Positions 7,343-64,000 of a DNA stretch of 64,000 nt are shown piece after piece. Position 1 is the stretch's first letter; every line of letters begins with the position of its first letter. The stretch is taken from IMG/VR virus record IMGVR_UViG_3300037297_000066, positions 62,001-126,000 of that record. One strand, given 5' to 3'. Made by a program: the position numbers and the translations under genes. The notes beneath the pieces are model-generated. The model was given only the letters and a program-made list of their open reading frames with translations, ran no database searches and was not told the DNA's origin.

Positions 7343-7615
7343 CTAAAGCTCAGACAAGATCCGATCCCACACCGTTGGGGCGGGTTTTGGCTCCTGCTCC
7401 TGCTCCTGTGCCCAACGCTTAGCCACTTTCTCCAACTCCACGAGCGGCTCGTTTGTCCTTTCCAAGTCCCCTGCCGGCTGAAGGGGTGGGTCAGGCGTAC
7501 GCCACTGTCTCCGTCGAGAAGCCACCAGCCTCTTGTGCAGACTTCTCATCACAGAGCCGCAGAGAGCGCCCGCCAGAAACCATCCCCACCAGGGAAGATC
7601 CAACCACCACATCAC
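7343..7615 (-). CDS. Membrane-anchored hypothetical with W-tag (PTVWDRIL)
   Basis: N-terminal TM; C-terminal tag. Confidence 0.65.
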   Translation of the reverse strand: MMWWLDLPWWGWFLAGALCGSVMRSLHKRLVASRRRQWRTPDPPLQPAGDLERTNEPLVELEKVAKRWAQEQEQEPKPAPTVWDRILSEL

Positions 7616-8334
7616 GGATCTCGATCAAGCCGTTCCCAGCAGGTAGGCGTTTGAGCTTGCTGTTTTCGTTCTTCGACTGCATTCAAAGCCTCCATCCTCT
7701 CCAACATGTCTCGCAGACTTTGAAGTGTAGCTTTGTCGGGGACAGCCTGCTCTTCGGAAGGTTTGGAAACCTGCACGATCTCCAACGCTCCTTGTCTACC
7801 TCGAACGAAGTACGTTCCCGTCACCCAAACTAGCTCCATTTCAGGAACATCCCTGTAGCTTCTGACAACGTGCACCAAACCAGGGGCTTCGTCAGCGTCT
7901 ACAGAAACAGATGCGTTGACTCTCACCGTAATCTGAGGGTTCTCGACTCCATCCCACCTGGAACCACGCACGTCTCTCAAAGAGTTCCCGTTCAACGACA
8001 AGCTTTCCAGATGGTCTGCTACCTCGGTGAATTCTTCGAGTTCTTCCGTGTCCAATCGCACATCGTACTGTAGATGGTGCTGATGAGACCAAGCCACCTG
8101 CTCAGCCTTTCGCTTCTGTTTTCGCTTTTCCCACCATTCTAAGGTCCTGACTACGGCACTTATCAGTAGCATCCCCACTACCGCTACTAGCAGCCCTACT
8201 GTGTGATCGGCAGACATCCTAACGGTACTCTTCTCCATGGATGCTGAGATTCCGAACCCACCGGAGATTAACAGCAGCCTGAGGTTGAGGAGACTCCAAC
8301 TCACGGGAGCGACCCAGTATGTAGCTACCAGCAT
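7612..8334 (-). CDS. Membrane-anchored hypothetical with W-tag (PTCWERL); start probably internal
   Basis: TM segment; tag; overlap with the downstream gene. Confidence 0.6.
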   Translation of the reverse strand: MLVATYWVAPVSWSLLNLRLLLISGGFGISASMEKSTVRMSADHTVGLLVAVVGMLLISAVVRTLEWWEKRKQKRKAEQVAWSHQHHLQYDVRLDTEELEEFTEVADHLESLSLNGNSLRDVRGSRWDGVENPQITVRVNASVSVDADEAPGLVHVVRSYRDVPEMELVWVTGTYFVRGRQGALEIVQVSKPSEEQAVPDKATLQSLRDMLERMEALNAVEERKQQAQTPTCWERLDRDP

Positions 8335-8998
8335 CTGAACCGTTTCGGAACCCGTTTAAGGCCACCTCTACTTCCTGATGGATGCTCTGAATGGTCCTAC
8401 GATTTCCGTTGAGGAGAACGGTTACCCTCCAAGGCATCGAATCAAGTGTCACATTCCCGGTCGTCACTCGAACAGCACTAGGACGCAAACACCTCAAGAA
8501 GTTGGTTGCCGCATTGTTCCAAGGGGTGCCCCACAGTTCTTGCAGCACAGGTAGACTGAACCACCCAAAAGAATGGTCTCGGGTTTCGTAATCAACCCCG
8601 TGACTAGAGATGTAAGAGTCGGCTACGTCGGTCGCCTCTCGTTGTGTTCTCAGAGCCGCTAGGTTCTCTGGAGAATCTCTTTCCGCAAGCTCTTCTGGAG
8701 TCCTCTCGTAGAAACGCAACCCTATCGGTTGCCGGACTTCATCCGCAGGCAATACCGTGAGCTCAGTCCGAACCGGAAGTTTGTTGAGGTCCGGAAGCTC
8801 TTCTTGCTTCGGACTTCCCTGTATGATGAGCCCTCCCCCCACCACTTGTTCTTTTGGGAACCGATCTAGGTGAATGAGGGTAGCCTCTTCCTCCATCTCT
8901 TCCAGTGAAGGATTTTCCGGACGAGGATTCACCTCTTCCCAGGCAGCTTCGATGGGTTCACGGCTGTCGTCAGTCATTGACTTCCCATCCTTCTCCAC
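8219..8998 (-). CDS. Hypothetical protein; C-terminal region weakly resembles I13/I78 protease-inhibitor fold
   Basis: VRVTTGNVTLDSMPWRVTVLLNG resembles the V.xG..VT.D....RV.V pattern; weak. Confidence 0.5.
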   Translation of the reverse strand: MEKDGKSMTDDSREPIEAAWEEVNPRPENPSLEEMEEEATLIHLDRFPKEQVVGGGLIIQGSPKQEELPDLNKLPVRTELTVLPADEVRQPIGLRFYERTPEELAERDSPENLAALRTQREATDVADSYISSHGVDYETRDHSFGWFSLPVLQELWGTPWNNAATNFLRCLRPSAVRVTTGNVTLDSMPWRVTVLLNGNRRTIQSIHQEVEVALNGFRNGSDAGSYILGRSRELESPQPQAAVNLRWVRNLSIHGEEYR

Positions 8999-10676: not shown

Positions 10677-11396
10677 TCAGTTCTTGTCCTGTAGAAGGCG
10701 CTCAAACCAAGATTTGCGAGGCTTGGAAGGTTTTTCAAGGGCCGCTGGCTTTGCAGTGTTTTTTGCCGGAGATTTCCGTCGATCAGGAGTCTGGGTTCGA
10801 GGGGACACTCTCGTTACCCTCCTCTCTACGAACGAGGTATTTCCGAATCGAGCTATGGTCTGCATAGCCCTTCGCATCTCTTCTCCAACCCGCTGCATTT
10901 CCCGATGTATGGTTTCTTGGGCACGCCTCAACTCTTCCTGTTCGGTAGAAAGGGGGCTTCTTGTGTGGTTCTCATCGGGATCTTCGTCGTCCTCCTCGTC
11001 TTCGTCCTCCTCGTCTTCGTTCTCCTCGTCTTCGTCCTCTTCTAAGTCGTCTTCGTCCTCGTCCTCCTCGTCTTCGTCCTCCTCGTCTTCGTTCTCCTCG
11101 TCTTCGTTCTCCTCGTCTTCGTCCTCCTCGTCTTCATCGAGGTAATTGTCATCGTCCTCCTCGACCCACACCTCTCCCAAATCGTCCTCCTCGTCATCTT
11201 CTTCACTATCATCATCATGGCTTCGCCTGATGGTGATAGGGGCTCCTCCAGAACTGGAAAGGGACTCCTTCAGTTGGGAAGTTCGTTCTTGAACTCTTAA
11301 CCTCAAGTTTCCCAACCCCTTCAGCATCGCCAGGCTTCCGTAGTAAGAAAGCAAAACGACGGCTACCAAACCAACGATCAGAACCACGTAAATCAT
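10677..11396 (-). CDS. TM protein with long Asp/Glu tract and W-tag (KSWFERLL)
   Basis: N-terminal TM; very long E/D run; tag. Confidence 0.75.
   Translation of the reverse strand: MIYVVLIVGLVAVVLLSYYGSLAMLKGLGNLRLRVQERTSQLKESLSSSGGAPITIRRSHDDDSEEDDEEDDLGEVWVEEDDDNYLDEDEEDEDEENEDEENEDEEDEDEEDEDEDDLEEDEDEENEDEEDEDEEDDEDPDENHTRSPLSTEQEELRRAQETIHREMQRVGEEMRRAMQTIARFGNTSFVERRVTRVSPRTQTPDRRKSPAKNTAKPAALEKPSKPRKSWFERLLQDKN
10978..11220 (-). repeat. Low-complexity degenerate repeat encoding E/D tract
   Basis: Recurrent TCCTCGTCTTCGT units on the + strand. Confidence 0.85.
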
Positions 11397-11956
11397 GTGT
11401 TTCTCTCTTCAGAGTCAGGTTCAACAATGCGTTCTTGCCAGGACCGGGGTTGTGGGGGAGCTGCTGCTGGAGTCCGAGACTCTTCTTCCCAATGTTGTCG
11501 CAGCACCCTAGCCAGATCGGTTTCTCTGGAAGGCTCCCCTGAGGCTCTGGCTTGGGGTTGAGGAGGGGGAGACGGCGCTTGGGGCTGAAGGTTCCTGATA
11601 CCCCGCATAAACTCCGTGATGCCTCCACCGAAGGCAGGAGCAACCCCTGAACCATGCCGAGCCAGATTCCTCAACCTCTCTTGATCTTCTTGGATCTCTT
11701 CAAACCGGCGCAAGGACCGCTGCAGGTCATTTCGCTCCTGTAACAACCCTTCGTTTGCGTTCCTCAGACGCTGATTGTTCTCCGTGTAGTGATCAAAGGT
11801 CTGCTTGTATGTATCAAGTATCCCTTCCATAGCCTTGAGCATGCTTTCATGATCTTGGGCCAGGAATTTCCACTTAAGTCCCCACCGGGTGACCAGGAAC
11901 AAGCCCACACTCAAAATCAGCACCACCACAACCCGAATGATGTCGGCCTGACTCAC
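11393..11956 (-). CDS. TM coiled-coil hypothetical with W-tag (RSWQERIV)
   Basis: TM, coiled coil, tag; overlap with next gene. Confidence 0.7.
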   Translation of the reverse strand: MSQADIIRVVVVLILSVGLFLVTRWGLKWKFLAQDHESMLKAMEGILDTYKQTFDHYTENNQRLRNANEGLLQERNDLQRSLRRFEEIQEDQERLRNLARHGSGVAPAFGGGITEFMRGIRNLQPQAPSPPPQPQARASGEPSRETDLARVLRQHWEEESRTPAAAPPQPRSWQERIVEPDSEERNT

Positions 11957-12900: not shown

Positions 12901-13437
12901 ATGTGGGGCCAACAACGACAGCTCTGCGGCTCACAAGCAGAGACAAGGATTCGTCGTCATCGGACTTCTCTTGAGGAGAAACGAATGAGCTCTAAATTCG
13001 AGCAACGGCTAGCACTGGTTTGTCTTCTGTTCGTGCTCTCCGGGGTCCCCGCTGTAGTAGTAGGCTACAACTACGGAGCTCTCTACGGGGTGGGAGTCTT
13101 GGCTTTCGCCACATGGGTGGGGATGGTGTCTTCGATCCTGGTCTTTTCAAAACGGCTAGAAGAATCCCGTGACCAGGTGAAAAGCCTACAAAAACGCCTG
13201 ACAGAGACCCGTACAGATCTTCGACGAAGTCATCTGACTTTGACCCAGGAGTTCCGAGAACACTGTCAACAGACGGTCCCCCCTGCTAGATCCCCCAGTT
13301 TGAGAGAGCATCGAATCGAGGGTACTAGACTTTTGATCAAGATACCCGTCAGAAAGAACCATCGTTTAGAAACCGATGCAGACCCTCCAACTGCTTGGGA
13401 TCGTTTGAATTCTGAGGAATCTGAGACCACGGGTTAA
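12901..13437 (+). CDS. Two-TM coiled-coil protein with W-tag (PTAWDRL)
   Basis: Class B motif at 12878; alternative start MSSKF after GAGGAG. Confidence 0.7.
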   Translation: MWGQQRQLCGSQAETRIRRHRTSLEEKRMSSKFEQRLALVCLLFVLSGVPAVVVGYNYGALYGVGVLAFATWVGMVSSILVFSKRLEESRDQVKSLQKRLTETRTDLRRSHLTLTQEFREHCQQTVPPARSPSLREHRIEGTRLLIKIPVRKNHRLETDADPPTAWDRLNSEESETTG

Positions 13438-15037: not shown

Positions 15038-16243
15038 ATGCGCAACATGCGAATGAGAATCAAGGGAGCGGATGGACGGTTCAAGACCGTTTACGAATCT
15101 CACTTCGATCCTAAAACGGGCAACCTTGTTCGCAGGGTTTGGGAACTTCGCAACAGGGATCGGTTCTCGTTAATCGAAGAGGATGAAGACCTGTGCACCC
15201 AGTTTCGCTCACAATTCCCTCACAGGCATAGGAGTTTTTGCTCCCCCTCCCCGGAGATGGTGGACATCTCCATCACGAACCAATGCAACTTCGAATGCCC
15301 TTACTGCTACCAGTGCAGCACCAAGGATGCTGAGCACGGGGAGCACAACCTGGTAGAGAAGGTGATCAAGGGATTCCAACACCCTCCCTACCAGATTGCC
15401 ATCGGGGGCGGAGAACCTACCCTCCACCCAGATCTGCCAGACATGTTGCGAACCGCCCGGCGACTCAAGGTAGTTCCCAACTACACGACCAATGGCAGCT
15501 TCATGACTAGAGAATTGGTCGAAGCCACCAACAAGTACTGTGGCGGGGTAGCCATGACCTACCACCCCCACAAGGGTATTGCCTGGTTTCGGAAGCACTA
15601 TCTCCGGCTGAAGAACAGTCTCACTTGCCAAGTCAACGTCCACCTCATTCTCAAGCGAGGAATTCTTCGAGATCTTCGAGCCTTGATGGGCCTCCAAAAA
15701 GAAGCGGGTCCCATCTCCCTGGTACTGCTCGCCTACGATCCCCAGGGACGAGGCACGATGAGCCAGCTTCCCAGTCGTAGCGACTTCAACGACCGGCTAC
15801 CCCAACTGCTGATCACTGCCCAAAACCAGGGAATGCGTGTCGCCTTCTCTGAGGGTCTCCTGCCTTACTTCCTCAGCCGCCCCCAAATCGCTGCCAACGC
15901 TGGACTAGGAACCCGGTCAGAGGGTCTGTTCAGCTGCTACGTCAACTCCCAGGGGCAGATGTTCGAAAGCAGCTTCGGGGCTGCTCCATGTGCAGGAGAC
16001 TTCCAAAAACCAACGGTTTTCGAGAATACTTCCCAAGAGCTCTGGGAGAATTTGTATGTGGGGTACAAACCTGACTTTCCTCCATGCTCTACCTGCAAAG
16101 GCAAAAGTCGGTGTGCACCTCGGGCGGTTACCTTTGGCTACCTGCTGTGTGCCCACTCAGAGATCCACAAGCTCCCTCATTGTGAACGCCCTGCCGAGGG
16201 AGTTAAGACCGCCTTCGAGAGACTTTTGGAGGAAGACGACTGA
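15038..16243 (+). CDS. Radical SAM protein with SPASM/twitch-like C-terminus and W-tag variant (KTAFERLL)
   Basis: CNFECPYC (CxxxCxxC), GGGEPTLHP, YTTNG, C-terminal Cys cluster (CSTC...C). Confidence 0.9.
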   Translation: MRNMRMRIKGADGRFKTVYESHFDPKTGNLVRRVWELRNRDRFSLIEEDEDLCTQFRSQFPHRHRSFCSPSPEMVDISITNQCNFECPYCYQCSTKDAEHGEHNLVEKVIKGFQHPPYQIAIGGGEPTLHPDLPDMLRTARRLKVVPNYTTNGSFMTRELVEATNKYCGGVAMTYHPHKGIAWFRKHYLRLKNSLTCQVNVHLILKRGILRDLRALMGLQKEAGPISLVLLAYDPQGRGTMSQLPSRSDFNDRLPQLLITAQNQGMRVAFSEGLLPYFLSRPQIAANAGLGTRSEGLFSCYVNSQGQMFESSFGAAPCAGDFQKPTVFENTSQELWENLYVGYKPDFPPCSTCKGKSRCAPRAVTFGYLLCAHSEIHKLPHCERPAEGVKTAFERLLEEDD

Positions 16244-16647: not shown

Positions 16648-17045
16648 TGGCGGCCATCAAGCGACGAGGAGCAGGCCCTCTCGACAACCAGTCGGGGAAG
16701 GAATGGTTTCGTCAGATCCAGGAAGCTGTCTCCCAACAGATCTACTACGTGGCCACGCATCCTGAGGCTAGCCTGGTCAGTCATGACAAAGCCAGAGCGG
16801 CCATCGCTGTCCTATTCGCCTTGGAGCCGATGGTCGAGTTCCCTCTCACTACCTATGAGGATACGGTTTCGGTCCTTGCCCGGTTGATGCAGCATCCCCA
16901 ATGGCTGGCCCAGTGGCGCCATGAGGACGCTGTTTTGGAAGATCTCAACCGACACATAGACAAGGCTGAACGAGAACGAGATCGCCGGCTCACCGGGAAA
17001 CCAGAACGAGCATTCCCGACGGCCTGGGACAGAATTCGGCGCTGA
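16647..17045 (+). CDS. Hypothetical with W-tag (PTAWDRI)
   Basis: TAATG overlap; tag. Confidence 0.7.
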   Translation: MAAIKRRGAGPLDNQSGKEWFRQIQEAVSQQIYYVATHPEASLVSHDKARAAIAVLFALEPMVEFPLTTYEDTVSVLARLMQHPQWLAQWRHEDAVLEDLNRHIDKAERERDRRLTGKPERAFPTAWDRIRR

Positions 17046-20109: not shown

Positions 20110-20925
20110 ATGCCTACTGACACAGAACGTTCCCTGCTTGCGTTGCTCGAACAGCATCGTCAGGAAACCAATACACCAGTCGCTGCTCCTCCTTCCCAAC
20201 TTCCTGAGCTGACTCCACAGGTACTCTTGGGAGCGGGGGCCCTGCTGGAGTTTGAAGCGGCTCAACAGATCCAGCCGGGGACCCCCGTGACCCCAGACGG
20301 AAGCCCCCATAGGGTACGAGCGGCTCAACAGGGAGAGCCCGTGGTAGGGTTGGCTCACTCAATGGGAAGACGAGTCGTAGAAGGCCGGGACGTCCAAACG
20401 GTTGTGACGTCCGAACCGTCGGTTCAGGAGTTGTCTCAACTTTTCATGAACTCCGAAGCAGAAGCGGCGTTTCAACTCTCTGGTGGAGACCATACAGTAG
20501 CGGCTGAGGACGCTTTTTCGGTGGAGTTCGACAGCGAGTTTGGAGGAGAGGGCACAACCACTCCCAACCCGGCTGCTCGGTTCCAGGTGGGTAGAGAGAG
20601 CCCTCCTCCAATCAACTTCAACCGAGCTCCAATGTCCGGCCCGTCGGACGGGGTGGTGGTGGCTACCCGAGGGTCCGATGGCAGCTTCAGGCAAGTGCCC
20701 CATAACGCCCCTCAGAGGCCCTCCTACGGCTCCTTCAGAGACGGGGCCCCAGGGTCCGTAGCAAGATCATTGAGGGACCACGTGACTCATGTAGAGGCCC
20801 AGAGGGACCCTATGATGGGCCCCTCCTCCAGACAACCAACGAGTCACCGAACGGTAGCTGCTCCGAACCCCAACCGTCACGTGTACCGACCGACTGCTTG
20901 GGAGCGCCTCATCTCAGACGACTAG
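20110..20925 (+). CDS. Hypothetical with W-tag (PTAWERLI)
   Basis: 271 aa ORF; tag. Confidence 0.7.
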   Translation: MPTDTERSLLALLEQHRQETNTPVAAPPSQLPELTPQVLLGAGALLEFEAAQQIQPGTPVTPDGSPHRVRAAQQGEPVVGLAHSMGRRVVEGRDVQTVVTSEPSVQELSQLFMNSEAEAAFQLSGGDHTVAAEDAFSVEFDSEFGGEGTTTPNPAARFQVGRESPPPINFNRAPMSGPSDGVVVATRGSDGSFRQVPHNAPQRPSYGSFRDGAPGSVARSLRDHVTHVEAQRDPMMGPSSRQPTSHRTVAAPNPNRHVYRPTAWERLISDD

Positions 20926-23733: not shown

Positions 23734-24447
23734 ATGGACTCAAAACTCGAAAACACCATCCAGTCGGCTGACCCCAAAATGATCAAGAAGGTCAGAGAGG
23801 CTGTTGAAAGACACTCTCCTCACCCACCCCCGACCGCGGAACAAGCTCTGTTCGAACCCGAAGAGCAACTCACCAACCCCGGGGGCAGCAACCAGATAGC
23901 GTGTTTTCTCAGGAAGGCTACTCAAAAGCTAGAAGAGGTTGGGGAGACGGCCAACTTCTTCACGGGGGGCCTAGACAAGATCGAAAGAGTGTTGCTGTTG
24001 GTCGTGCATCGCATGGGACGTTTTGGTATGGCCATGGCGTTGCTAGCCTTGTTCTGTGCCATCGCTTGTGTGCTTATGGTGCTGGTGATCCTTCGTCAAG
24101 AAGACATCTTGATGAACTACCAGGAGCTCAAGGCTCAACAAAGCGCATCCCACAAGCAGCAGACCACCCTGGTCGAATCTCAGAAACGAGTCGAAGAGAA
24201 GGTAGAGAAGGCCCAGGACAACATCGCAGAGGCCCAAGAACAGCTCGACGAGATGCCCAAGATCGCTGTCGTGGATGACGAAAAGTCATCGTCTTCAAAG
24301 CCTCGGTTAATCCTGAAGGCCCCCAAGCGAAGGTCCGTGAAGCACATGCCCTTCCCAGACTCAGATCCCCCTATACCTGTGGCGGAGCCCGACGAGCCTG
24401 AGGAAACTGTAGAGATACCTTTAGAACTGCCCCGCAAATCCCGCTAG
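23734..24447 (+). CDS. TM coiled-coil protein (spanin/cell-division-like candidate)
   Basis: Central TM, long coiled coil, Pro-rich tail. Confidence 0.65.
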   Translation: MDSKLENTIQSADPKMIKKVREAVERHSPHPPPTAEQALFEPEEQLTNPGGSNQIACFLRKATQKLEEVGETANFFTGGLDKIERVLLLVVHRMGRFGMAMALLALFCAIACVLMVLVILRQEDILMNYQELKAQQSASHKQQTTLVESQKRVEEKVEKAQDNIAEAQEQLDEMPKIAVVDDEKSSSSKPRLILKAPKRRSVKHMPFPDSDPPIPVAEPDEPEETVEIPLELPRKSR

Positions 24448-24683
24448 GTAGCTTCCAGGATTCTCTGCCAGCAAGTAGGGGGAAGGGTTCGCCCTGCCAA
24501 CGTGATGCTGACGGTGTATTGCAGTTCGTTGAGGTTGTGTTCCTTAGAGCTCACACAAGCCTCAACCAGCCTTCCTTTCTCATCTAGACAGGTAACGGGA
24601 TCCCCTACGTTCAATGTGGACAAGTCCTCGGGTATGTCTGCCGACACTACCATGCCGTTCATGACGAACACCTGGAAAGGCAT
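24444..24683 (-). CDS. Small hypothetical with W-tag (PTCWQRIL)
   Basis: Tag; coupled to the upstream gene. Confidence 0.6.
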   Translation of the reverse strand: MPFQVFVMNGMVVSADIPEDLSTLNVGDPVTCLDEKGRLVEACVSSKEHNLNELQYTVSITLAGRTLPPTCWQRILEAT

Positions 24684-24685: not shown

Positions 24686-25279
24686 TCAGTCCTCGTCCTC
24701 ATCTTGCATGAGTCTCTCACCCCAAGTAGGGGCTGCCGTTTCAGCTCGACGCTCTAGGACTCGCAGAAAGGCCGATCTAGCTTCGGGCAGTGTCTTGGGT
24801 TTCCTTACGATCTGGAACACTGCCCCGGGCATTTGGTTATTTTTCCACCAGGTTTCCGAAACACAGTACTCAGGACTACGCACAGAGTCACTAACCTCCC
24901 CCTGTCCAGAGAATACTACTAGATCTCCCCCATAATCAGGGGACCCTTCATGCAACGAGATGTCCCCTCCAACGTGTCTCAGTGACTGAGTTTGTCCCAG
25001 ACGAAGAGAACCGTCTGGGTTGAAGCCCGGGGGAACCGTTGCTATGGGGGGCAACACATCGTGTTCAATGATGTCGAAACGCCTGGTTCGTATGTCAGCG
25101 ATACTGATCGTAGGGTTGGACTGGAGGGGAGCGCCCCAAGGGTTCTCCCAAGAATTTCCGACCCTGATGAGTTCGTGTTCAGGAGGGGTAGGCGAATGGT
25201 GCTCTACCACCTCTTCTGATCCCACCGACCGAATACGCTCTACCTGCTCTCGGGTAGGAGTCTCTGGTTCATCAGGCAT
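24686..25279 (-). CDS. Hypothetical with W-tag variant (PTWGERLM)
   Basis: GAGGTAG RBS-like sequence; tag. Confidence 0.65.
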   Translation of the reverse strand: MPDEPETPTREQVERIRSVGSEEVVEHHSPTPPEHELIRVGNSWENPWGAPLQSNPTISIADIRTRRFDIIEHDVLPPIATVPPGFNPDGSLRLGQTQSLRHVGGDISLHEGSPDYGGDLVVFSGQGEVSDSVRSPEYCVSETWWKNNQMPGAVFQIVRKPKTLPEARSAFLRVLERRAETAAPTWGERLMQDEDED

Positions 25280-26098: not shown

Positions 26099-26653
26099 AT
26101 GCGTTACTTTTTCGACACCGAATTCATTGAGGATGGCAAGACCATCGAGCTCATCTCCATTGCTCTTGTGGCAGAAGACGGACGTGAGCTCTACTGCATC
26201 AACGACGAATGCAAGCTCGACCGAGCCAACGACTGGGTCAAGCAACACGTGATCCCACATCTACCCAAACACCAGAGTTACGGATGGGCTTCCCCCCATC
26301 CTTGCGGGACGTCGATCCCACCTTGGATGTCTCGGCGAGACATCAAGAAAGCCGTTCTGAAATTCGCTCCTCCGGAAAGCAAGCCACACTTCTGGGCCTA
26401 CTTCGCCGACTACGACTGGGTGGTTTTCTGCCAGCTCTTCGGGAAGATGGTGGACCTGCCCCAGGGCTACCCTATGTTTTGCAGAGACTTGAAGCAGCTC
26501 ATGTGGCACTTGGGAGTTAGCAAGAAGGACACCCCTCCCAAACCGGCAAACGCTCACGATGCCTTGGCCGATGCTCGCTGGAACCTAGCCCTCTTCAAGC
26601 ACCTTGAAGAGCATGGAAAGCTCCACGGGATCACCAGCTACATCACCCTCTAG
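26099..26653 (+). CDS. DEDDh 3'-5' exonuclease (Rv2179c/RNase AS-like)
   Basis: YFFDTEFIE...IELISIALV...YDWVVF...HDALADARW. Confidence 0.85.
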   Translation: MRYFFDTEFIEDGKTIELISIALVAEDGRELYCINDECKLDRANDWVKQHVIPHLPKHQSYGWASPHPCGTSIPPWMSRRDIKKAVLKFAPPESKPHFWAYFADYDWVVFCQLFGKMVDLPQGYPMFCRDLKQLMWHLGVSKKDTPPKPANAHDALADARWNLALFKHLEEHGKLHGITSYITL

Positions 26654-27189
26654 TCCTCTTCCAGACGCTCCCAGAGGGTTTTAGGCTTTGGCTTAACTAA
26701 AACAGATCGCAGGTCATCCAAGGCCCCTCGCAGTCTACGACTAGCCTCGGAAGTGCTGGTTCCATCCATACGACTGGATCCATTGCTCATGTGAACCTGG
26801 ATTCTCCAGTTTCTGACTCGCTCGGGGATCTCTCCATCTGGGGGCATCCAATCCAGGATAGGAGCTTCCAAGTTCAAGCGGAAACGATCACGTCTAGCCT
26901 CCATGAAGGGAGCCAGTCGAGGGTCACTCGCCACCAGGTCTTCTACGAACGTAGAGGTAATCTGTCGTATGTTTTGGGTAGGAACAATTACCTCTAAGTG
27001 ATCTGAGTAGTACACCCATAATCTAGGGCTTCTGACGGCCAAACGTATCAAGGCCACTGCCCAAGCAAAGGTTCGTCCGGTAGCTCTGGGGCCGTTTCCC
27101 AAGCTTTCTTCAGCAAGGTTTACCTGACCTCGATCAAACAACCAGTCGAGGACTTCAACAGCTCTGAGTTGGGCGTCTGACAGGGGCAT
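26650..27189 (-). CDS. Hypothetical, paralog A, W-tag (KTLWERL)
   Basis: N-terminus closely similar to the next gene. Confidence 0.75.
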   Translation of the reverse strand: MPLSDAQLRAVEVLDWLFDRGQVNLAEESLGNGPRATGRTFAWAVALIRLAVRSPRLWVYYSDHLEVIVPTQNIRQITSTFVEDLVASDPRLAPFMEARRDRFRLNLEAPILDWMPPDGEIPERVRNWRIQVHMSNGSSRMDGTSTSEASRRLRGALDDLRSVLVKPKPKTLWERLEED

Positions 27190-27191: not shown

Positions 27192-27770
27192 CTAATCCTC
27201 AGGAATGTCTTCTTGCAGGCGCTCCCAGACGGTCTTGGGGACCTTGGGGGGCTCAGCTGCCCGAATTTTCCAACCAACCTGTCGAGTTTCCTTGTCCTGA
27301 AGCCTGATCTCCTCCACCGGCATACTGGAGTCCAGCCTGATTGCCGGAAACTCCTCAGACCGCTCTTGTGCTTGTTGACGAGCATACTCTGAGGCCCAAG
27401 TCACGATATCTCTGTTCGTCACTTGTGGAGGAGGGTTATGGTCCAGGACGGGCAACCAGTTGTCGATAGGCTCCGGAAGGCTTAGCCGAAAGTGGTGCTG
27501 GTCTATTTCTAAGTTACCATCTAGCCGAAAGTCACGACTCACGAGCTCTCGAAGGATACTTTGGGTACCTTCGTGAAGGTGACGGTGGAGATGCGTGTAC
27601 TGTTCGGCATGATCCGAGATCTCCACCCATTGACCAGGGTGACGAGCTGCTTCCCGTATAAGGGCCACAACCCAAACCAAAGAGCGTCCGGTTTGACGGA
27701 GGCTGTCGTCGGAACGGAACAGCCAATCCAAGACTTCCAAGGCTCGAAGTTGGTTTTCTGATAGGGGCAC
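27192..27770 (-). CDS. Hypothetical, paralog B, W-tag (KTVWERL)
   Basis: MPLSENQLRALEVLDWLF versus MPLSDAQLRAVEVLDWLF. Confidence 0.75.
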   Translation of the reverse strand: MPLSENQLRALEVLDWLFRSDDSLRQTGRSLVWVVALIREAARHPGQWVEISDHAEQYTHLHRHLHEGTQSILRELVSRDFRLDGNLEIDQHHFRLSLPEPIDNWLPVLDHNPPPQVTNRDIVTWASEYARQQAQERSEEFPAIRLDSSMPVEEIRLQDKETRQVGWKIRAAEPPKVPKTVWERLQEDIPED

Positions 27771-46421: not shown

Positions 46422-46714
46422 TTAGGCTCCACCATCGAAAACCTGTCCCGATCTTGATGGGGCATGACGCCCAAAAGGCGTTCCCAAGCTGTACGGGGAA
46501 CCTCTGGCTTCTTAGGTAAAGGCGTAGGAGCCGGAGGGAGCCCCGCTGATAGCCTTTTGTTCCGGTGGTACTCGTTGTCCACCCAGGACACGAAACGCCT
46601 TAGGGAGGGCTCCAGACGGTGTTCTCGGAGCTTTTCTCGGGCTTCGAACAAGAGACAGACGATGTCCTTCTGTTCTCGAAGGGTCAGTTGGCTAAACATG
46701 TAGGATAACGACAT
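46409..46714 (-). CDS. Hypothetical with W-tag (RTAWERLL)
   Basis: GTG-TAGGTA-N5-ATG start. Confidence 0.6.
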   Translation of the reverse strand: MSLSYMFSQLTLREQKDIVCLLFEAREKLREHRLEPSLRRFVSWVDNEYHRNKRLSAGLPPAPTPLPKKPEVPRTAWERLLGVMPHQDRDRFSMVEPNYPQ

Positions 46715-49116: not shown

Positions 49117-50093
49117 CAATCAATCAACAACGACTCGATCAGAAGTCTCTCGTGCCAGGTCTTTCTGGGATCCGAGACCTGTTTCCACACGGACTCGAAG
49201 GACTTGTTCACGAGACGGCTCCAGTAAATGCGTTCCCCCGTGTCCAACCGCATCAAACTGACGACAGTGGCATCAATCAAGAGCACCCGGTGAACCAACC
49301 CGATGTCTCTCCGGGCCACCCAAGCACCAAGAGTGCACCACTCGGGAAGAGCACACCCCCGCACTGAAGTAGAGACAGGGTAGTGCCCCCTCAAAGGACT
49401 GTTAGAGGAGTGGCGCAGGAGCGAAGGTCCATTTGAGGAAACGAAGCTGACTTCAGTGAAGGTGATCCCAGTCTGGTCAGGGCCTCTGCCAGGGTCCACG
49501 CCCATCACTCTTCTAGAGGGATCAAAAGGCACGTTCGCTCCCATGGATACTGCCACATCTCCCCCGGCCCTCAAAATTGGTTGTACACCGGCAGGAATTA
49601 CCGTCTCTGCCTCTGGGAGAGCTCTTTCTACTATCGGGAGAGCTCCTTCTGGCAGTTCCTCAACCGAGAAGACCCTCCTCCCTATCGAAGTGTAGTCCAA
49701 CCTTTGGCGTAGAGGAGGGATCAAGGCTTGGAGACTTGTCCCCATCCCGCTCCAATCCCGTCTGCCTTCTCGGATGTAGTTTTCTACGATGTTCCGAAAG
49801 TCATCCCGGTTCTGGTTGGGACCAGACCTCCGGAAGGTTTCCCCAAAGGTCAACGGAAACGGATTAGCACCTCTGCGGTGTTCTTCTAGGAGCTTAAGTA
49901 GCCTGGAATCCTGGGGTCCCTCACACCCCTCACGAAAAGTTACCCGAACCTCGATTTCTCTGGTAGAAGGGATCACCGCAGGAACTTCTACCCGTTCCAC
50001 GTGAGGATCCGATTGGAGCGTAACCACATCTCCCCGGAGATTGATCCTATCGTCCAAAGAACGCAGGAAATAAACCAAGATCCAGGTTTCCAC
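49116..50093 (-). CDS. Hypothetical with W-tag variant (KTWHERLL)
   Basis: 325 aa ORF whose stop abuts the terminal repeat. Confidence 0.65.
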   Translation of the reverse strand: METWILVYFLRSLDDRINLRGDVVTLQSDPHVERVEVPAVIPSTREIEVRVTFREGCEGPQDSRLLKLLEEHRRGANPFPLTFGETFRRSGPNQNRDDFRNIVENYIREGRRDWSGMGTSLQALIPPLRQRLDYTSIGRRVFSVEELPEGALPIVERALPEAETVIPAGVQPILRAGGDVAVSMGANVPFDPSRRVMGVDPGRGPDQTGITFTEVSFVSSNGPSLLRHSSNSPLRGHYPVSTSVRGCALPEWCTLGAWVARRDIGLVHRVLLIDATVVSLMRLDTGERIYWSRLVNKSFESVWKQVSDPRKTWHERLLIESLLID

Positions 50094-52230: not shown

Positions 52231-52838
52231 TGACTGCACACCTGGTAGGGGAAGACCGAACCAGAACCTTGTGTGGGATATACGTGTCAGTCCTTCCCGA
52301 GGGGGACACCTGGGCTTTTCAGTCTTCAGCCACCTACTCCAGCTGTGCTGCCTGTATCAACGCTAACAACGCCCCCGTCACAGTCCGAAGAGAGGGGTTT
52401 ACTGTACATCGAGAAGGGAACCCCCGAGTTTCAAACGAAGAGCACGGGAGTTGGGCCACGCTGCTTGGATCTGCTTTTGACTACCATCAAGAGTGCACCA
52501 AAGAACTCCAAATCAAAGTGGCCCAACTCGAAGAGGATGTCTCCGTACTGACACTGGTGTTGGCGACCTTTCTGCCTCATCTGAACTCAGAGTGCAGGGA
52601 GACTGTGATGAGCCTTCTGAAGTCGAGGCCCCTCCCCTCATGTCGCCCCGAGCTGGAGACGTCCGACGATGGCGGTGTATGGTTCAAGCCAGAGATCCTT
52701 CGAACCACCCAGGATCCCCCCACGGTGCTCACCATTTGGGAACGACTCTTAGAGGATGCGTCTCCTCCCCAACCCGTCCCGACCGTACGGCTGACTCATG
52801 GATCCGATACTGCTGAGACTGGCAAAGAAGGCGATTGA
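52230..52838 (+). CDS. Hypothetical with W-tag (LTIWERLL)
   Basis: N-terminal small Cys motif; tag. Confidence 0.6.
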   Translation: MTAHLVGEDRTRTLCGIYVSVLPEGDTWAFQSSATYSSCAACINANNAPVTVRREGFTVHREGNPRVSNEEHGSWATLLGSAFDYHQECTKELQIKVAQLEEDVSVLTLVLATFLPHLNSECRETVMSLLKSRPLPSCRPELETSDDGGVWFKPEILRTTQDPPTVLTIWERLLEDASPPQPVPTVRLTHGSDTAETGKEGD

Positions 52839-53003: not shown

Positions 53004-53411
53004 TTGATTCCCAAAGTCGGCTCCTGGTGGCGAACCAAGAGCGCCCAGTGGCCCAGTACGGCTTTTTTACTCACAGGCTTCAGGGACGTCTTCCACGAGG
53101 TGGTTTCCATCACTGAAGAGGACGTCTGCCTGATCCAAAACGGAGCGGACCGGCCCTACTTCATCCCCAAAGACGAATTCGACCAAGGAAAGTTCAAGCC
53201 TTTCCGGCCCCGAGGCTCAATACCTTCGTGGGTGAGACCGGGGGTCCTTTTTCGTAGACCCCGGGGAAAAACCTGGACAGTCACGACGGTTCGAGGAAGG
53301 TTCTTCACCGCCGAGATCAGGTACGGCACCTTTCGGTTCTTCAGTCCTGACGAGATTTCGAACTTACGGCCGTACCTGACGTGGCACGAGCGACTTCTAT
53401 CTACAGATTGA
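53004..53411 (+). CDS. Hypothetical with W-tag variant (LTWHERLL)
   Basis: Two SH3-like repeats; tag. Confidence 0.6.
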   Translation: MIPKVGSWWRTKSAQWPSTAFLLTGFRDVFHEVVSITEEDVCLIQNGADRPYFIPKDEFDQGKFKPFRPRGSIPSWVRPGVLFRRPRGKTWTVTTVRGRFFTAEIRYGTFRFFSPDEISNLRPYLTWHERLLSTD

Positions 53412-55461: not shown

Positions 55462-56145
55462 ATGACTACACTTCCACGAGCCATCTGGGTAGCCCTTTTT
55501 AGGGGACGGAAAGAGCTTTTCGAGAGCCGCATTCGGGTCAACCTACCTTGCCAAAGGATCAACCTTCAATGGCCTCAAGAGGCCGGGGTGGCCACCAAAC
55601 TAGCCGTCTACTCTGCCAATGATCAAGAACGGGAACTCTACCAAGAGACAGTCCAGCTCAACTCAAGGGTTGATTTCAACTCGGGAGAGCGCCTCTATTG
55701 GGTTTGCTTCGAACCCAACATCCCTAGGATCTACCACATCCTAGGCACGGAGATCCCAAAGCCCGGGGAAGTCTGGAAATGGGAGGACTCTAGGGGACTG
55801 GTGCTTTCCAGCGACGGGACTCTCACCAAGGTTGCTCTCAGAGACGGAACTCACCAAGAAGTACCGACTGAGAGCCTGCTCCAGGGGGGTAGAGCAGAAA
55901 GTGTCCAGCAACCCGTCGTCGATGGTGTATGGATTGGTAGAGACGACGACATCTCCTACAAGATAGTTAGCTTTGAAGGAAACCAAATCGTGCTCTGTTC
56001 CGAAAACCTTGTCTATGACGCCACTGAGAAACGTCACGTGACAGAGACGGTTTGGGTCACACGAGAACAACTCTACCTGGACTACCGTCCCCTAGAGAAA
56101 CTAAGTGCCTGGGAGCGCCTGACTCTCTCAGACGAGGAAACATGA
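55462..56145 (+). CDS. Hypothetical with W-tag (LSAWERL)
   Basis: 227 aa ORF; coupled; tag. Confidence 0.65.
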   Translation: MTTLPRAIWVALFRGRKELFESRIRVNLPCQRINLQWPQEAGVATKLAVYSANDQERELYQETVQLNSRVDFNSGERLYWVCFEPNIPRIYHILGTEIPKPGEVWKWEDSRGLVLSSDGTLTKVALRDGTHQEVPTESLLQGGRAESVQQPVVDGVWIGRDDDISYKIVSFEGNQIVLCSENLVYDATEKRHVTETVWVTREQLYLDYRPLEKLSAWERLTLSDEET

Positions 56146-56473: not shown

Positions 56474-56734
56474 ATGGCGCAGCTCATCAGACGCACCAAA
56501 CAAGGAAAAGTACTCTCCACCCGAGAGGTATCCTTCGGAGTCTTTCCTGAAGACCCCCCATACCTTGGTGTGAGGACGGTACCTGAAGGCATCGCTAACT
56601 ACGAGATTGTACTCAAGCTAACTCCTGGAGAAGCCTTCATCCTCTCCCGAAACCTGGTGCGGGTCCTCGACGAGACGCACCAGAAACGACAAGGGCGCCT
56701 CAGGACTCTTTGGGAACGATTGATGGACTTCTGA
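56474..56734 (+). CDS. Hypothetical with W-tag (RTLWERLM)
   Basis: TGATG-coupled; tag. Confidence 0.6.
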   Translation: MAQLIRRTKQGKVLSTREVSFGVFPEDPPYLGVRTVPEGIANYEIVLKLTPGEAFILSRNLVRVLDETHQKRQGRLRTLWERLMDF

Positions 56735-58109: not shown

Positions 58110-58709
58110 ATGTCGGCTGAGCTCATTCAGCAAGCTGTCCGGGAAAGACTGTTCAAGAGCCTCGTGTTCGATCTCGTAGGTGAGGGGGAGCCTCTTTACG
58201 AGATGCCCAACCCCAAAGGGATCTGGTACCTGTCCTGGGCCACCAGACCTGATGCTGAGATCCGATGGAGGAAAGCCAAGATCCACAGGAAGGACAACTT
58301 GTTTCGACCCCCTTACACTAGGCTTGGTTTACTGAATCGGCTACAGGGGACGATCGAGCAGGGACTTGCTAGCGGAGAGCGTTTGACCAAAGCCCTTCAG
58401 AAAATCCCCAAACTCAACAACGCGCACATCGTGGTCTACTACAAACGTGAATCGGCTCCTCCACCGACCACAGTGGCCTTCGGGGTAGTGGCTACCCCAC
58501 GAAAAGTAAAGCTCGCCAAGCTCCGAGACAACGCCATCCAGAAAGCCTGCACAGGTGCCGAGCTCGAACTGAACATCCCTGGCTGGGCCAATCCCTTGGA
58601 GCTTTGGATCAGAGAACTCCTAAGTGTTGCCAAAAAGACCAGCGCTTGGGACCTCATCTTAGAGGATTCGCTGTTCACTCCCCCCACTCGGGAAACCTCA
58701 CTGGCTTAG
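58110..58709 (+). CDS. Hypothetical with W-tag (TSAWDLIL)
   Basis: GGTG-TACGAT-N5-ATG. Confidence 0.7.
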   Translation: MSAELIQQAVRERLFKSLVFDLVGEGEPLYEMPNPKGIWYLSWATRPDAEIRWRKAKIHRKDNLFRPPYTRLGLLNRLQGTIEQGLASGERLTKALQKIPKLNNAHIVVYYKRESAPPPTTVAFGVVATPRKVKLAKLRDNAIQKACTGAELELNIPGWANPLELWIRELLSVAKKTSAWDLILEDSLFTPPTRETSLA

Positions 58710-58932: not shown

Positions 58933-58973
58933 ATGTACCGATATACACCAAACCGGTGTATCTTTCTAGAGCG

Positions 58974-59441
58974 ATGCCTTCCGACGACATCAGGAATAGA
59001 TCCAAGCGGTACCGCCATAATGTACCAGAAGGCTACTGCCCCTGGTGCTGTCTGCCCAAGGAATACGATCCCGGCCACACACCCCCTGGCTATTTCAGGA
59101 ACCAAAGCTTTAACACAAGCTCCTCCGAGTTTCGGCAATTCATGAAAGCCAGAAGGGAACAGTACCAAAGGGCCATCGATCTGCTGCCCGTGGCCGAACT
59201 GCTGAAAATGCCTGAACCGGTCAACTCTTCTTGGAGACTGACCATCTACCAACGAGCTTTTGCAAAAGCTTCCTCCAAACCTGCCAAGACTGCTTGGGAC
59301 CATCTCATGGAACGGGAGCCCGAATTCGACCTCTCGCCTGACGAGTTCCAGACTCAAGTCCAGAAGCTCATCAACACAGCCCGAAAGGCTGGTCTGTCAG
59401 TGGGCCTGATCCGAACCATCCTGGATGGGATGATCCTCTAG
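58974..59441 (+). CDS. Hypothetical with internal W-tag (KTAWDHLM)
   Basis: Divergent class B motif; CPWC. Confidence 0.6.
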   Translation: MPSDDIRNRSKRYRHNVPEGYCPWCCLPKEYDPGHTPPGYFRNQSFNTSSSEFRQFMKARREQYQRAIDLLPVAELLKMPEPVNSSWRLTIYQRAFAKASSKPAKTAWDHLMEREPEFDLSPDEFQTQVQKLINTARKAGLSVGLIRTILDGMIL

Positions 59442-59803
59442 TCATCCGCCAGGAGACGGTCCCAAACCGAAGGCTTACGAAGGTAGGCAGCCTTGGCCCT
59501 ACTCCGACGTTTCTCTTGCTTCCTGAGCGTCTTGAGGGCCTGGACCTCCTCAGGGTCGTCTTCCCACTCCTCGGGCTCAGGGAGGGCCTCCTCGGGCTCG
59601 GGAAGGGACTCCTCGGGCTCGTCAGAGGGGGCCGGGGGCACCCATCCTTTGGGTTTACGGATCACCCGGGTGACGACCCGATGCGTGGACGCAAAATCCT
59701 CGGAAGCGTCCTGGCACTCCTTTTGTTTGAAGGAGGCCAAAGACGGAAGGTCTGTCCAACCCCTAGCCCGGTGACAGTACTGGACCACGTAGTAACGGGG
59801 CAT
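59438..59803 (-). CDS. Hypothetical with W-tag (PSVWDRLL)
   Basis: GGTG-TATGGT-N5-ATG; tag. Confidence 0.7.
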   Translation of the reverse strand: MPRYYVVQYCHRARGWTDLPSLASFKQKECQDASEDFASTHRVVTRVIRKPKGWVPPAPSDEPEESLPEPEEALPEPEEWEDDPEEVQALKTLRKQEKRRSRAKAAYLRKPSVWDRLLADD

Positions 59804-59926
59804 GCCTCACCATACACCGTAGAAAGATCAGGATCTCTTGATTTTACCAGAAAAAGAAAAGGACTCTTCGACCTGAAAAACGGCTCCTCTGGTGTACTGT
59901 CTTAAGAGATCTCTCCGGAGGGACGT

Positions 59927-60641: not shown

Positions 60642-60944
60642 GTGTCGAAGCCCCCCACCACACTCGAAGAAGCCTACAAGGCTCTCGATGAGATGCTCAA
60701 TTCAGAGGATCTGGAGTACATCGATAGTTCCCCTGAAGCCAAGGCAATGGGGCGTTTTCACAACAACTTAGGCAGGCATCTGAGAAACGAGTGGGGGCTC
60801 TGGAACGGTTCACTTCTGAAGGAGAAACTTCGTCAGGAATTTGGAGTCAACCATCCAGATGACCTTAGCCACCACCTGCTAATAGGCTACTGGCACTACC
60901 GTCACCAAGGAAAGACCATGTGGGAACGGCTCCAGGAAGGGTAG
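60642..60944 (+). CDS. Hypothetical with W-tag (KTMWERL)
   Basis: LGRHLRNEWGLW...HPDDLS; tag. Confidence 0.65.
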   Translation: MSKPPTTLEEAYKALDEMLNSEDLEYIDSSPEAKAMGRFHNNLGRHLRNEWGLWNGSLLKEKLRQEFGVNHPDDLSHHLLIGYWHYRHQGKTMWERLQEG

Positions 60945-60958: not shown

Positions 60959-61339
60959 ATGGAAGGATCGGTTCTACACAACAAGCACCTGGACTTGGAT
61001 ACGTGGGCGGATTTCTTGGATCGATGCTCTTCGAGGTACGTTTCAAGACGACCTCATCTGACGTGCCCCCGAGGCTGCAAGCCCATTGAGATAGTGTCGG
61101 AGCCAGGCCACGCTGATGCGGGATACTGTCCCCGCTGCATGATTCGTTTTCAAATCCCTCTCACCTGGCATGAACGCCTTTTGGAACTGAAACCCAAGTA
61201 TGCCCCTGGCCAGGTTAGCCACTGGACAACGCTCTCCTATAGCGACGCCACCGTCACCAACGCACCTGTCATCTGGCAAAGCTCCACCCTTACCATCAGC
61301 ACTATTTACAGTACCTCCTCAAGAAACACCTTCCTATGA
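60959..61339 (+). CDS. Zn-finger hypothetical with internal tag (LTWHERLL)
   Basis: CPRGC...CPRC. Confidence 0.55.
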   Translation: MEGSVLHNKHLDLDTWADFLDRCSSRYVSRRPHLTCPRGCKPIEIVSEPGHADAGYCPRCMIRFQIPLTWHERLLELKPKYAPGQVSHWTTLSYSDATVTNAPVIWQSSTLTISTIYSTSSRNTFL

Positions 61340-63124: not shown

Positions 63125-63412
63125 GTGACGACTCCCGACCCAGAACGACCGTTTGAACCTGATTGGGCAAGCCCCCCAGGAGCCACCATCACTGATCTTA
63201 TGTTTGTACGTGGCGTGACACGAGCTAAGTTGGCTTCCCAGTTGGGGATCAACCTGCCAGAAGTAGACAAGCTGTTGTCGGGTGAACGCCATATGACGGC
63301 TTGTGACGCTTTGGGGTTGGAGGAAGTGTTTACGGTACCCGTGAGCTTCTGGTGCCGGCTTGAGGTTCAGTATCGCAAGACTCTTAAACGGCTTGAACAC
63401 AAGGCCGAGTGA
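63125..63412 (+). CDS. HigA-like HTH antitoxin
   Basis: SPPGATITDLM...RAKLASQLG...ALGLEEVFTVPVSFWCRLEVQY. Confidence 0.85.
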   Translation: MTTPDPERPFEPDWASPPGATITDLMFVRGVTRAKLASQLGINLPEVDKLLSGERHMTACDALGLEEVFTVPVSFWCRLEVQYRKTLKRLEHKAE

Positions 63413-63414
63413 CA

Positions 63415-64000
63415 ATGAGTGAAGCAGTTGACACTTCAGTGACGTCTGAGAATCTGAGTGAACTCTTCGAAGAGCCCTCAATCGAAGACGCTGTTCAAGC
63501 ACGCAGGGGCTGGTACTACTCCCAAAAAGGTTTCGTGGATGAGTGGGATGAGTGGCACTCCAGTGACTACTGGGAGGCCGAACGAGTTCTGTGGGAAACC
63601 CCCTTACGAGGCATTCGTTCAAACCTCCGACAACACTACTACGGACTCCCTTGGTCAGCCCAGCTCAAATACAGGCTTACGATCTACGGTAAACGTGACA
63701 AGAACCGAAGACTTCGTCCTGTGAGGTTCACCCCTGAGCTCCGCTTCGGTCAAACTCGGATCTACCTACCCTCGGTCAACTGTGCCTCTTTGAAGACGGC
63801 GTTTCGAAGAGCCGACGCTCACCCTGAGTTGAAAGCCCGGGTCCGAGAGTTGATGAAAAAGGTCTATAGCAAGAGAGAAGCCGCCTGTGTCTTTCGAAGA
63901 GTGGGTGGGCACAAAGACACCCCCATACGTACAGCTTGGGAACGAGTACTGACAGGACCTCCAGAGTGGTGTCCCTGGGCTACCTTGTTTCACGCCTATG
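63415..64000 (+). CDS. Hypothetical protein, partial (runs off the window end; missing from the ORF track); contains RTAWERVL
   Basis: Manual translation from ATG 63415 (MSEAVDTS...) is open to the end of the window. Confidence 0.7.
   Translation, partial: MSEAVDTSVTSENLSELFEEPSIEDAVQARRGWYYSQKGFVDEWDEWHSSDYWEAERVLWETPLRGIRSNLRQHYYGLPWSAQLKYRLTIYGKRDKNRRLRPVRFTPELRFGQTRIYLPSVNCASLKTAFRRADAHPELKARVRELMKKVYSKREAACVFRRVGGHKDTPIRTAWERVLTGPPEWCPWATLFHAY

Follow-up and report, generated by a model that had tools for sequence, protein, structure and literature searches.

Gene content of the window

We analyzed a 64,000-nt stretch of DNA (hereafter, the window) that corresponds to positions 62001-126000 of the viral contig IMGVR_UViG_3300037297_000066, focusing on a short tryptophan-containing peptide (hereafter, the tag) that recurs, mostly at the C terminus, on many of the encoded proteins. 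Two window proteins matched this 437,331-bp contig, which also bears the name Ga0394146_0000001, at 100% identity; its source samples are JGI 3300037297 and SRR12668987. The G+C content of the window lies between 54 and 60%, and many small open reading frames (ORFs) are found on both strands. About 76 window proteins were scanned against Pfam. Recognizable were a type I-C CRISPR-Cas effector set between two repeat arrays, a GT51 peptidoglycan transglycosylase, two peptidoglycan-binding proteins (one of them also an M15 peptidase), an SPFH protein, a tyrosine integrase, a LigT-like phosphoesterase, a 3'-5' exonuclease, a nucleoside deoxyribosyltransferase-NUDIX fusion, a deoxynucleoside monophosphate (dNMP)-kinase-like protein, a SocA/Panacea protein and one radical SAM enzyme. 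A PHROGs scan of ten larger window proteins without a Pfam family yielded no matches.

A protein of about 620 to 750 aa that belongs to no known family is encoded at the very start of the window, where it is truncated, and also on the related locus L123 (positions 5600-7858). It is kept at 39-51% identity in 25 large phage contigs. Cultured large phages of Mesorhizobium and Erythrobacter encode homologues that are 40% identical to the version of about 750 aa, and a Flavobacterium phage has a weaker match to part of it (30% identity over 37% of the query). Therefore, we regard the contig as belonging to a genuine, if distant, tailed-phage lineage. The protein is a useful marker for this phage group. 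Its tree is star-like and neither shows nor excludes a single origin of the tag.

A shared C-terminal tag is conserved at the protein level

A six-frame regular-expression scan of the window located 22 strict copies of the tag, 15 of the form [ST]-x-W-[DE]-R-[LI] and seven of a shifted form, [ST]-W-x-E-R-[LI]. Together with six one-residue variants (F or L for W, Q for E, L for R in two proteins and H for R in another), they account for all 28 sites listed in a preliminary description of this DNA, each of which was found in the ORF assigned to it (Table 1). With a single exception, the strict copies are located in long ORFs, and the majority lie 17 residues or fewer from the stop codon. Among 106 non-overlapping ORFs, the last 30 aa hold 18 strict copies and only two more are located further inside. 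As the preliminary description had suggested, these counts were compared with shuffled and internal sequence: 2000 within-protein residue shuffles gave on average 0.012 C-terminal and 0.096 internal copies, with a maximum of one to two. The C-terminal positional bias was highly significant (binomial P = 7e-13), and 26 of the 28 copies fall in the C-terminal quarter of their protein. By all-against-all BLAST the carriers are unrelated to each other, except for one paralogous pair (26650-27189 and 27192-27770), in agreement with the proposal of a mostly C-terminal tag on unrelated proteins.

The tagged share amounts to about 22-26% of the window ORFs. Comparison of the carriers with Pfam and PHROG resulted in no match beyond the radical SAM domain. 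The Cas proteins, the lysins, the integrase and the dNMP-kinase-like protein lack the tag, as had been stated before. Cas7 ends in P-T-P-T-C-W-E-D-Y-E-F, a partial look-alike (P-T-x-W-E) without R-L that scores far below the true tags.

At the conserved T/S, D/E, R and L/I residues, codon entropy is 1.8 bits at the third position and 0.26 bits at the first and second positions. The fixed residues are encoded by a wide range of synonymous codons: arginine by CGC, CGT, CGA, CGG and AGA, serine by both TCN and AGY (TCG, AGT), and leucine by CTN and TTG. Since third positions are close to random, we conclude that the tag is conserved at the protein level, as the preliminary description had supposed. 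A translated DNA or RNA repeat at gene ends, such as a terminator, a promoter or a mobile repeat, could explain recurrence at this position and nothing more. It is refuted by the codon analysis, including the use of both codon families for serine and arginine. The invariably correct reading frame on either strand and the different sequence of the promoter-like motif of this window (GGTGTA-Y-N-GTAGG) also speak against it, and we consider the chance of this explanation to be practically nil. Between near-identical relatives, four synonymous and one non-synonymous changes were counted in the tag, compared with 76 and 73 in the remaining sequence; this difference has the expected direction and is not significant (P = 0.37).

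The tag forms a putative capped helix behind a flexible linker

A column profile of 49 non-redundant copies, partly biased because many were retrieved by a P-T-A-W pattern, has P in 33 of 49 copies before T (45) or S (4), followed by A (36), W (46, otherwise F), E (33) or D (16), R (all 49), L (30) or I (16), and then L or M. In the tail that follows, 45% of the residues are D or E, vs. 3% K or R. The resulting consensus is P-T-A-W-E/D-R-L-L-x-D-D, and P and K/R are overrepresented in the 13 residues upstream of it. T-x-x-E corresponds to the classical N-capping box of helices, with P typically found directly before the cap. The shifted form keeps T-x-x-E-R-L, and only the W moves, by one position. 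This suggests a single helical frame, in which W, L/I and L/M would lie on one face.

In agreement with such a frame, AlphaFold modeling of a 157-aa tagged family (28 sequences) placed a domain (predicted local distance difference test, pLDDT, 80-90) before a linker (pLDDT about 42), and residues 148-153, which correspond to the tag, were predicted as a short helix that is not packed on the domain. A shallower model of the protein at 26650-27189 has the same layout. The distance between tag and stop codon varies from 2 to 29 aa or more, and internal, N-terminal and tandem double copies occur, including proteins with two tags in tandem. Therefore, a free C terminus is not part of the signal, and multivalent binding is possible.

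Five carriers are membrane proteins (the first five in Table 1). In all five, a K/R cluster follows the last transmembrane (TM) segment, and the two-TM protein at 12901-13437 also has a strongly basic N terminus. According to the positive-inside rule, the C-terminal tag therefore faces the cytoplasm in all five. The protein at 10677-11396 is membrane anchored, has an isoelectric point of 4.1 and carries a nearly pure D/E run of about 100 residues between the TM segment and the tagged C terminus.

Four of the five membrane-carrier genes flank the transglycosylase gene. This GT51 gene, whose product has an N-terminal TM segment, lies in an operon-like run with the four tagged membrane proteins and a peptidoglycan-binding protein. 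The transglycosylase is kept in the related loci L208 and L209; in L208, where the neighbors were checked, the genes next to it carry no tag.

The topology bears on two further explanations. The preliminary description had proposed an addressing signal, with capsid targeting among its possible uses. The tag might load cargo by binding the interior of the procapsid or of a phage-built compartment, as encapsulin peptides do on an HK97-type shell. The order of domain, flexible linker and C-terminal peptide of about ten residues is that of encapsulin cargo, and huge phages are known to package many internal proteins. However, five carriers with strong N-terminal or paired TM segments that obey the positive-inside rule should reside in the inner membrane, a metabolic radical SAM enzyme is tagged as well, no structural genes were found in or next to the tag-rich region, and the motif itself is unlike encapsulin peptides. 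While addressing or docking in a broad sense is supported by the succession of domain, hypervariable linker and conserved peptide, capsid packaging as a general role is weakened by the five cytoplasm-facing membrane carriers, and we consider cargo loading unlikely.

Alternatively, the tag might be a translocation signal, recognized at the C terminus by a coupling protein or export machine in the manner of acidic type IV secretion signals. It is indeed C-terminal, acidic and apparently uncleaved on many unrelated proteins. Yet integral membrane proteins are improbable substrates, known type IV signals are much less sharply defined than this motif, and no secretion-system genes were found among the window proteins scanned against Pfam or in the flanks examined; we rate export as very unlikely. 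The layout of sortase, exosortase and rhombosortase signals is also not found here, since the tag is followed by an acidic tail without a TM segment and the carriers are cytoplasmic or membrane proteins with the C terminus inside.

The tag is a stable yet modular property of protein families

When proteins were clustered by BLAST, families with the tag had it in every or almost every member, and families without it had no tagged member; tag status is thus a stable feature of a family. Alignments of three families (A2, A3 and A4) have a conserved N-terminal domain, linker indels of more than 100 aa and an invariant P-x-T-x-W-E-R block. In the 157-aa family (28 homologues, down to 39% identity), every member has the W and an acidic tail, and T and R may be replaced (e.g., N-A-W-D-I-I-M-E-D-D-D-D-A). 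Hence, the deep core of the tag consists of an aromatic residue, two further residues, two hydrophobic residues and then acid.

The radical SAM family provided the cleanest test of modularity, with the module both gained and lost. Of the 120 top-ranking homologues, 28 end no more than 10 residues past the final conserved motif of the domain. In at least 39, the domain is followed by x-L-P-L, then by a linker rich in P and E and by an acidic helix resembling the tag (e.g., T-A-Y-E-R-L-M-E-D-D, S-R-F-E-I-L-Q-E-D-D or A-L-D-R-L-L-E-D), and some others end differently. The preliminary description had asked for homologues lacking the tag, and this family thus has members with and without linker and tag. 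A recurrent tail, H-D-R-[VI]-I-x-[KR]-D-I-V or similar, was observed in the radical SAM homologues P0059, P0083, P0116, P0124 and P0105 and may represent a second tail type in other huge phages. Another supposed pair of homologues with and without tag (L185 and window 31192-31500) was discarded, as it consists of two overlapping frames.

The persistence of the tag also affects how it can be read as a degron or adaptor-binding tag, which would hand over accessory proteins, perhaps early ones, to an AAA+ protease or unfoldase so that they are removed at a set time, with the disordered linker as initiation site. It would be odd for a disposal signal to be kept across the wide divergence of the radical SAM family. 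Moreover, copies located internally, at the N terminus or 2-29 aa from the stop codon imply that the free terminus is not recognized, unlike in ssrA-type degrons, and the protein ends are acidic instead of non-polar. In favor of a degron, the tag ends disordered tails, among them the cytoplasmic tails of membrane proteins, and the recognizable window enzymes (Cas proteins, lysins, integrase and nucleases) are spared, with the exception of the radical SAM enzyme. An AAA ATPase of the classical clade is also encoded next to a tagged gene of the contig, but this protein has L-A-G where unfoldases have an aromatic pore-loop residue. Taken together, we think a degron improbable, to the same degree as cargo loading.

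The near-invariance of W and R in the window tags, together with the radical SAM enzyme in the region, could indicate a recognition site for posttranslational modification, for instance of W or R by a phage enzyme. This enzyme, however, bears the tag as well and has F in place of W, and across the lineage W can be replaced by Y, F, L or M and R by H, I or F. Such substitutions fit a binding surface better than a chemical target, and a modification site appears to us less probable still than export.

The tag is regional within the contig and restricted to one phage lineage

No tags were found in window positions 1-7342 or in the 10.5 kb upstream of the window. Past the window end, one more tag is followed by none in 6.7 kb, and an 11-kb piece at contig 139-150 kb contains one weak copy. 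An 18-base codon pattern matched three window tags and nothing else in the 437-kb contig. The tag is thus concentrated in about 57 kb (window 7343 to approximately 66000), with nearly tag-free flanks, and the notion of a genome-wide signal has to be given up in favor of a regional one.

A 14-base codon pattern applied to IMG/VR returned, among the matches listed, mostly chance hits and an unrelated, conserved internal P-T-A-W-E-R-V segment; it also led to a related 252-kb contig. This contig encodes 39-48% identical homologues of three window proteins and, within 20 kb, five to six C-terminal tags on proteins without a window homologue. In JGI metagenomes, the 18-base pattern retrieved 39 stretches, 26 of which are in-frame C-terminal tags with acidic tails. 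They originate from many soil, peat and sediment samples, and their neighboring genes are often tagged, too. Because untagged window proteins have homologues on these contigs at 30-48% identity, we assign the contigs to the same lineage. Homologues of one recurrent tagged family are located on scaffolds of up to 393 kb, and scaffolds of 320 kb and 129 kb carry five to six tagged genes per roughly 30, including forms with Y for W. Two tag-bearing loci have a conserved block in common (L204, 6761-8685; L206, 6603-8522), in which a LigT/Acb1-like phosphodiesterase and a CCA-adding/poly(A)-polymerase-family enzyme precede three consecutive tagged genes.

Among 185,579 bacterial and archaeal species (one genome each), the 18-base pattern matched 10 times, which is about the chance expectation, and none of the matches was C-terminal. 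In 23 loci from more distant relatives, only one relaxed match was found in 653 ORFs, and the first 50 kb of the cultured Mesorhizobium phage contain no tag in 92 ORFs. A syntenic 130-kb relative has only two tags in 27 genes. Tag density therefore varies among relatives, and this window is an extreme case.

A word-indexed homologue search with the tag region alone returned only the query, as the tag shares too few words. The tag profile (A5), searched against 1.84 billion representatives, gave four matches at E ≤ 0.001, two of them true double-tag proteins and two look-alikes. The look-alikes, a translated repeat and globin-like N termini with T-L-W-D-R-L-G-G-E-E, were rejected. In P0004 (765 aa), three repeats start with this sequence and resemble the N termini of truncated-globin-like domains, a caution for surveys based on regular expressions.

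Relation to known peptide signals

The preliminary description did not recognize the tag as a described motif. This holds: besides the Pfam and PHROG results, a full-text literature search on the peptide and on shared C-terminal motifs in huge phages found no description. The tag is akin in principle to cargo-loading and hub-binding peptides and a member of no described family.

Encapsulin cargo-loading peptides are likewise short, conserved and C-terminal behind a flexible linker on unrelated proteins, and address one partner related to phage capsids. They are rich in G, S and L, lack both W and an acidic tail, and serve one to few cargo types encoded beside the shell gene, whereas here dozens of carriers include membrane proteins. 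No encapsulin shell or Linocin-type family was found among the window proteins scanned. Encapsulation peptides of bacterial microcompartments share the amphipathic helix, the poorly conserved linker and the position at the terminus of unrelated enzymes, but they comprise about 18 residues with only the hydrophobic pattern conserved, while this tag is about 10 residues long, nearly invariant at T, W, E/D and R, and has an acidic tail. No microcompartment shell proteins were seen. The T4 capsid targeting sequence, also a short phage-specific peptide that addresses several unrelated proteins, is N-terminal and removed by the prohead protease; the tag described here is C-terminal, occurs on membrane proteins as well and has no cleavage-site signature.

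PIP boxes, beta-clamp motifs, SSB-type tails and the gp45-binding tails of T4/RB69 are hydrophobic-plus-acidic peptides that end disordered C-terminal tails and bind one hub. Their signatures (Q-x-x-L-x-x-F-F and Q-L-x-L-F) are absent from the tag, which has no conserved Q and a different spacing. Further, their clients are DNA enzymes, whereas here the recognizable DNA and RNA enzymes are untagged and membrane proteins are tagged. Degrons of the ssrA/SspB type resemble the tag as C-terminal peptides on disordered tails that are transferable between proteins, but they need a free, non-polar C terminus, while the spacing between this tag and the acidic protein end varies, and some copies are internal or duplicated. 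Finally, the LIR/AIM motifs and the MIM1 motif of ESCRT-III have a W-x-x-L core with acidic neighbors or a terminal helix docking to a hub. The tag matches the short and generic pattern [WFY]-x-x-[LIV]; this likeness is by pattern only. LIR binds as a beta-strand, and the receptors (Atg8, MIT domains) are not known from bacteria or phages.

A proposed modular docking motif for a common cytoplasmic partner

We propose that the tag is a modular short linear docking motif for one common cytoplasmic partner, a reading we prefer and to which we give about an even chance. T or S would cap an amphipathic helix together with the E or D three residues on (S/T-x-x-E capping box), usually after a P, and W, L/I and L/M would form a single hydrophobic face ahead of the D/E run. 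This helix would end a disordered P/K/R-rich linker of very variable length on unrelated globular or membrane-anchored proteins and be read in the cytoplasm. One common receptor would accommodate W and L in a hydrophobic pocket and the acidic tail along a basic rim, and would tether or co-localize many accessory proteins at one site. We favor a receptor encoded by this phage lineage, because the motif is absent from cellular genomes at the sensitivity of our test and is found in one phage lineage only.

Several observations weigh against this proposal. The structure models are of low confidence at the tag itself. The cellular-genome control relied on one narrow codon pattern and would miss rare host ligands. 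No receptor was identified, and no recognizable peptide-binding domain was found among the window proteins. The AAA ATPase whose gene neighbors a tagged one elsewhere in the contig was considered as a receptor and rejected: its AAA domain is Cdc48-like without an aromatic pore-loop residue, and it has no other link to the tag. Comparison of carriers and neighbors with Pfam, PHROG and the PDB and a Foldseek search with the 157-aa family model returned nothing informative. Additionally, tag forms are mixed within one genome (W/Y and R/K/I/F on the 320-kb scaffold), and so do not make up a clean co-evolving dialect, which could have proved the receptor to be phage-encoded. Genome-specific dialects, considered since three tags of one metagenome sample share I-M-G-E-D-x-F, were not established, given this mixed scaffold. 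The anatomy of the tag also fits adaptor-type degrons and cargo-loading peptides.

Further features of the window

The cas genes form a type I-C set (Table 1) that includes a helicase-only Cas3-like protein followed by a 238-aa protein without assignment; cas1, cas2 and cas4 were not recognized in the window. The two flanking CRISPR arrays have a period of 72 bp.

Nine perfect copies of the promoter-like motif GGTGTA-Y-N-GTAGG are present, and with up to two mismatches allowed there are 31 matches vs. 11.7 expected. The motif lies 2-10 nt upstream of start codons, which suggests leaderless or very-short-leader transcripts, and it also precedes both CRISPR arrays. As it is found before tagged and untagged genes alike, a promoter common to the tagged genes was rejected.

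Two ORFs overlap on opposite strands at 59438-59905. The real gene is the minus-strand 121-aa ORF, as judged from its tag and from a gene call in an independent (Logan) assembly; the tag reported earlier for position 59438 is thus present, and its carrier is the ORF 59438-59803. The JGI annotation of this contig gives the radical SAM gene and 27192-27770 in split or truncated form.

Table 1. Tag copies and further features of the window (TM, transmembrane; positions refer to the window)
Feature	Position	Strand	Carrier or remark
Tag TVWDRILSEL	7346..7375	-	End of 90-aa N-terminal-TM protein 7343-7615; 4 aa from motif to stop
Tag TCWERLDRDP	7615..7644	-	End of 240-aa membrane protein 7612-8334; K/R cluster after TM, C terminus inside
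Shifted tag SWFERLLQDK	10683..10712	-	End of 239-aa TM protein 10677-11396
Shifted tag SWQERIVEPD	11414..11443	-	187-aa TM/coiled-coil protein 11393-11956
Tag TAWDRLNSEE	13390..13419	+	Two-TM protein 12901-13437 (N-in, C-in)
Variant TAFERLLEED (F for W)	16208..16237	+	Radical SAM enzyme 15038-16243; homologues with and without appended tail
Tag TAWDRIRR	17019..17042	+	132-aa protein 16647-17045; tail basic, not acidic
Tag TAWERLISDD	20893..20922	+	271-aa protein 20110-20925; 37%-identical homologue L183 keeps tag across variable linker
Variant TCWQRILEAT (Q for E)	24447..24476	-	79-aa protein 24444-24683
Shifted tag TWGERLMQDE	24698..24727	-	197-aa protein 24686-25279
Tag TLWERLEED	26653..26679	-	179-aa protein 26650-27189; AlphaFold: domain, low-confidence linker, terminal helix at tag
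Tag TVWERLQEDI	27204..27233	-	192-aa protein 27192-27770, paralogue of 26650-27189
Variant TAWDLLDEDL (L for R)	27792..27821	-	145-aa protein 27780-28217
Tag TAWDRIQEDD	30863..30892	+	150-aa protein 30443-30895
Tag SAWERLLVGN	35411..35440	-	185-aa basic protein 35387-35944
Weak variant TALERVSDDS (L for W)	37379..37408	+	Protein 36677-37417; also N-terminal copy S-Y-W-D-L-L-D-E
Tag TAWERLLGVM	46463..46492	-	101-aa protein 46409-46714, 21 aa before end
Shifted tag TWHERLLIES	49131..49160	-	325-aa protein 49116-50093
Tag TIWERLLEDA	52731..52760	+	Protein 52230-52838, 29 aa before end
Shifted tag TWHERLLSTD	53379..53408	+	135-aa protein 53004-53411
Tag SAWERLTLSD	56104..56133	+	227-aa protein 55462-56145
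Tag TLWERLMDF	56705..56731	+	86-aa protein 56474-56734
Variant SAWDLILEDS (L for R)	58641..58670	+	Protein 58110-58709, 16 aa before end
Variant TAWDHLMERE (H for R)	59289..59318	+	Protein 58956-59441, 44 aa before end
Tag SVWDRLLADD	59441..59470	-	121-aa ORF 59438-59803; called as 121-aa gene in Logan assembly
Tag TMWERLQEG	60915..60941	+	100-aa protein 60642-60944
Shifted tag TWHERLLELK	61163..61192	+	Internal, 52 aa before end of protein 60959-61339
Tag TAWERVLTGP	63931..63960	+	Internal in 248-aa protein from 63409, running past window end
Conserved protein of ~620-750 aa	2-1336	-	Truncated at window start
Peptidoglycan-binding protein	6209-7321		In run with GT51 gene
GT51 peptidoglycan glycosyltransferase	8970-10676	-	
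CRISPR array	37717-38540		
Type I-C set	39710-46183		
Cas5	39710-40393		
Cas8c/Csd1	40390-42246		
Cas7	42298-43386	+	
Cas3-like protein	43398-45470		
CRISPR array	48448-48628		
GGTGTA-Y-N-GTAGG	12057-12069	-	
GGTGTA-Y-N-GTAGG	12878-12890, 25652-25664, 31174-31186, 36662-36674, 37436-37448, 39695-39707, 46955-46967, 55120-55132	+	

Implications

Most genes of huge phages are ORFans without a handle for study, and a shared, transferable peptide offers one. The tag groups dozens of proteins of no assigned role into one functional set and predicts a receptor that should be retrievable with a synthetic peptide. It can also be used as an annotation marker, as it reveals real genes (59438-59803) and flags the phage lineage in metagenomes, and its use as a portable targeting tag is conceivable. 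Should the receptor prove to be a phage structure, the tag would illustrate how the proteins of a very large phage are organized within the bacterial cell. More tentatively, we suggest that this uncultivated huge-phage clade may possess a private protein-addressing code, in which a helix of about ten residues, gained and lost as a module, would route a large share of the accessory proteome to one receptor or structure that the phage builds in the infected cell; inner-membrane proteins and a radical SAM enzyme would be among the clients. If true, this would constitute a sorting or assembly system based on short linear motifs in a bacterial virus, with no described counterpart.

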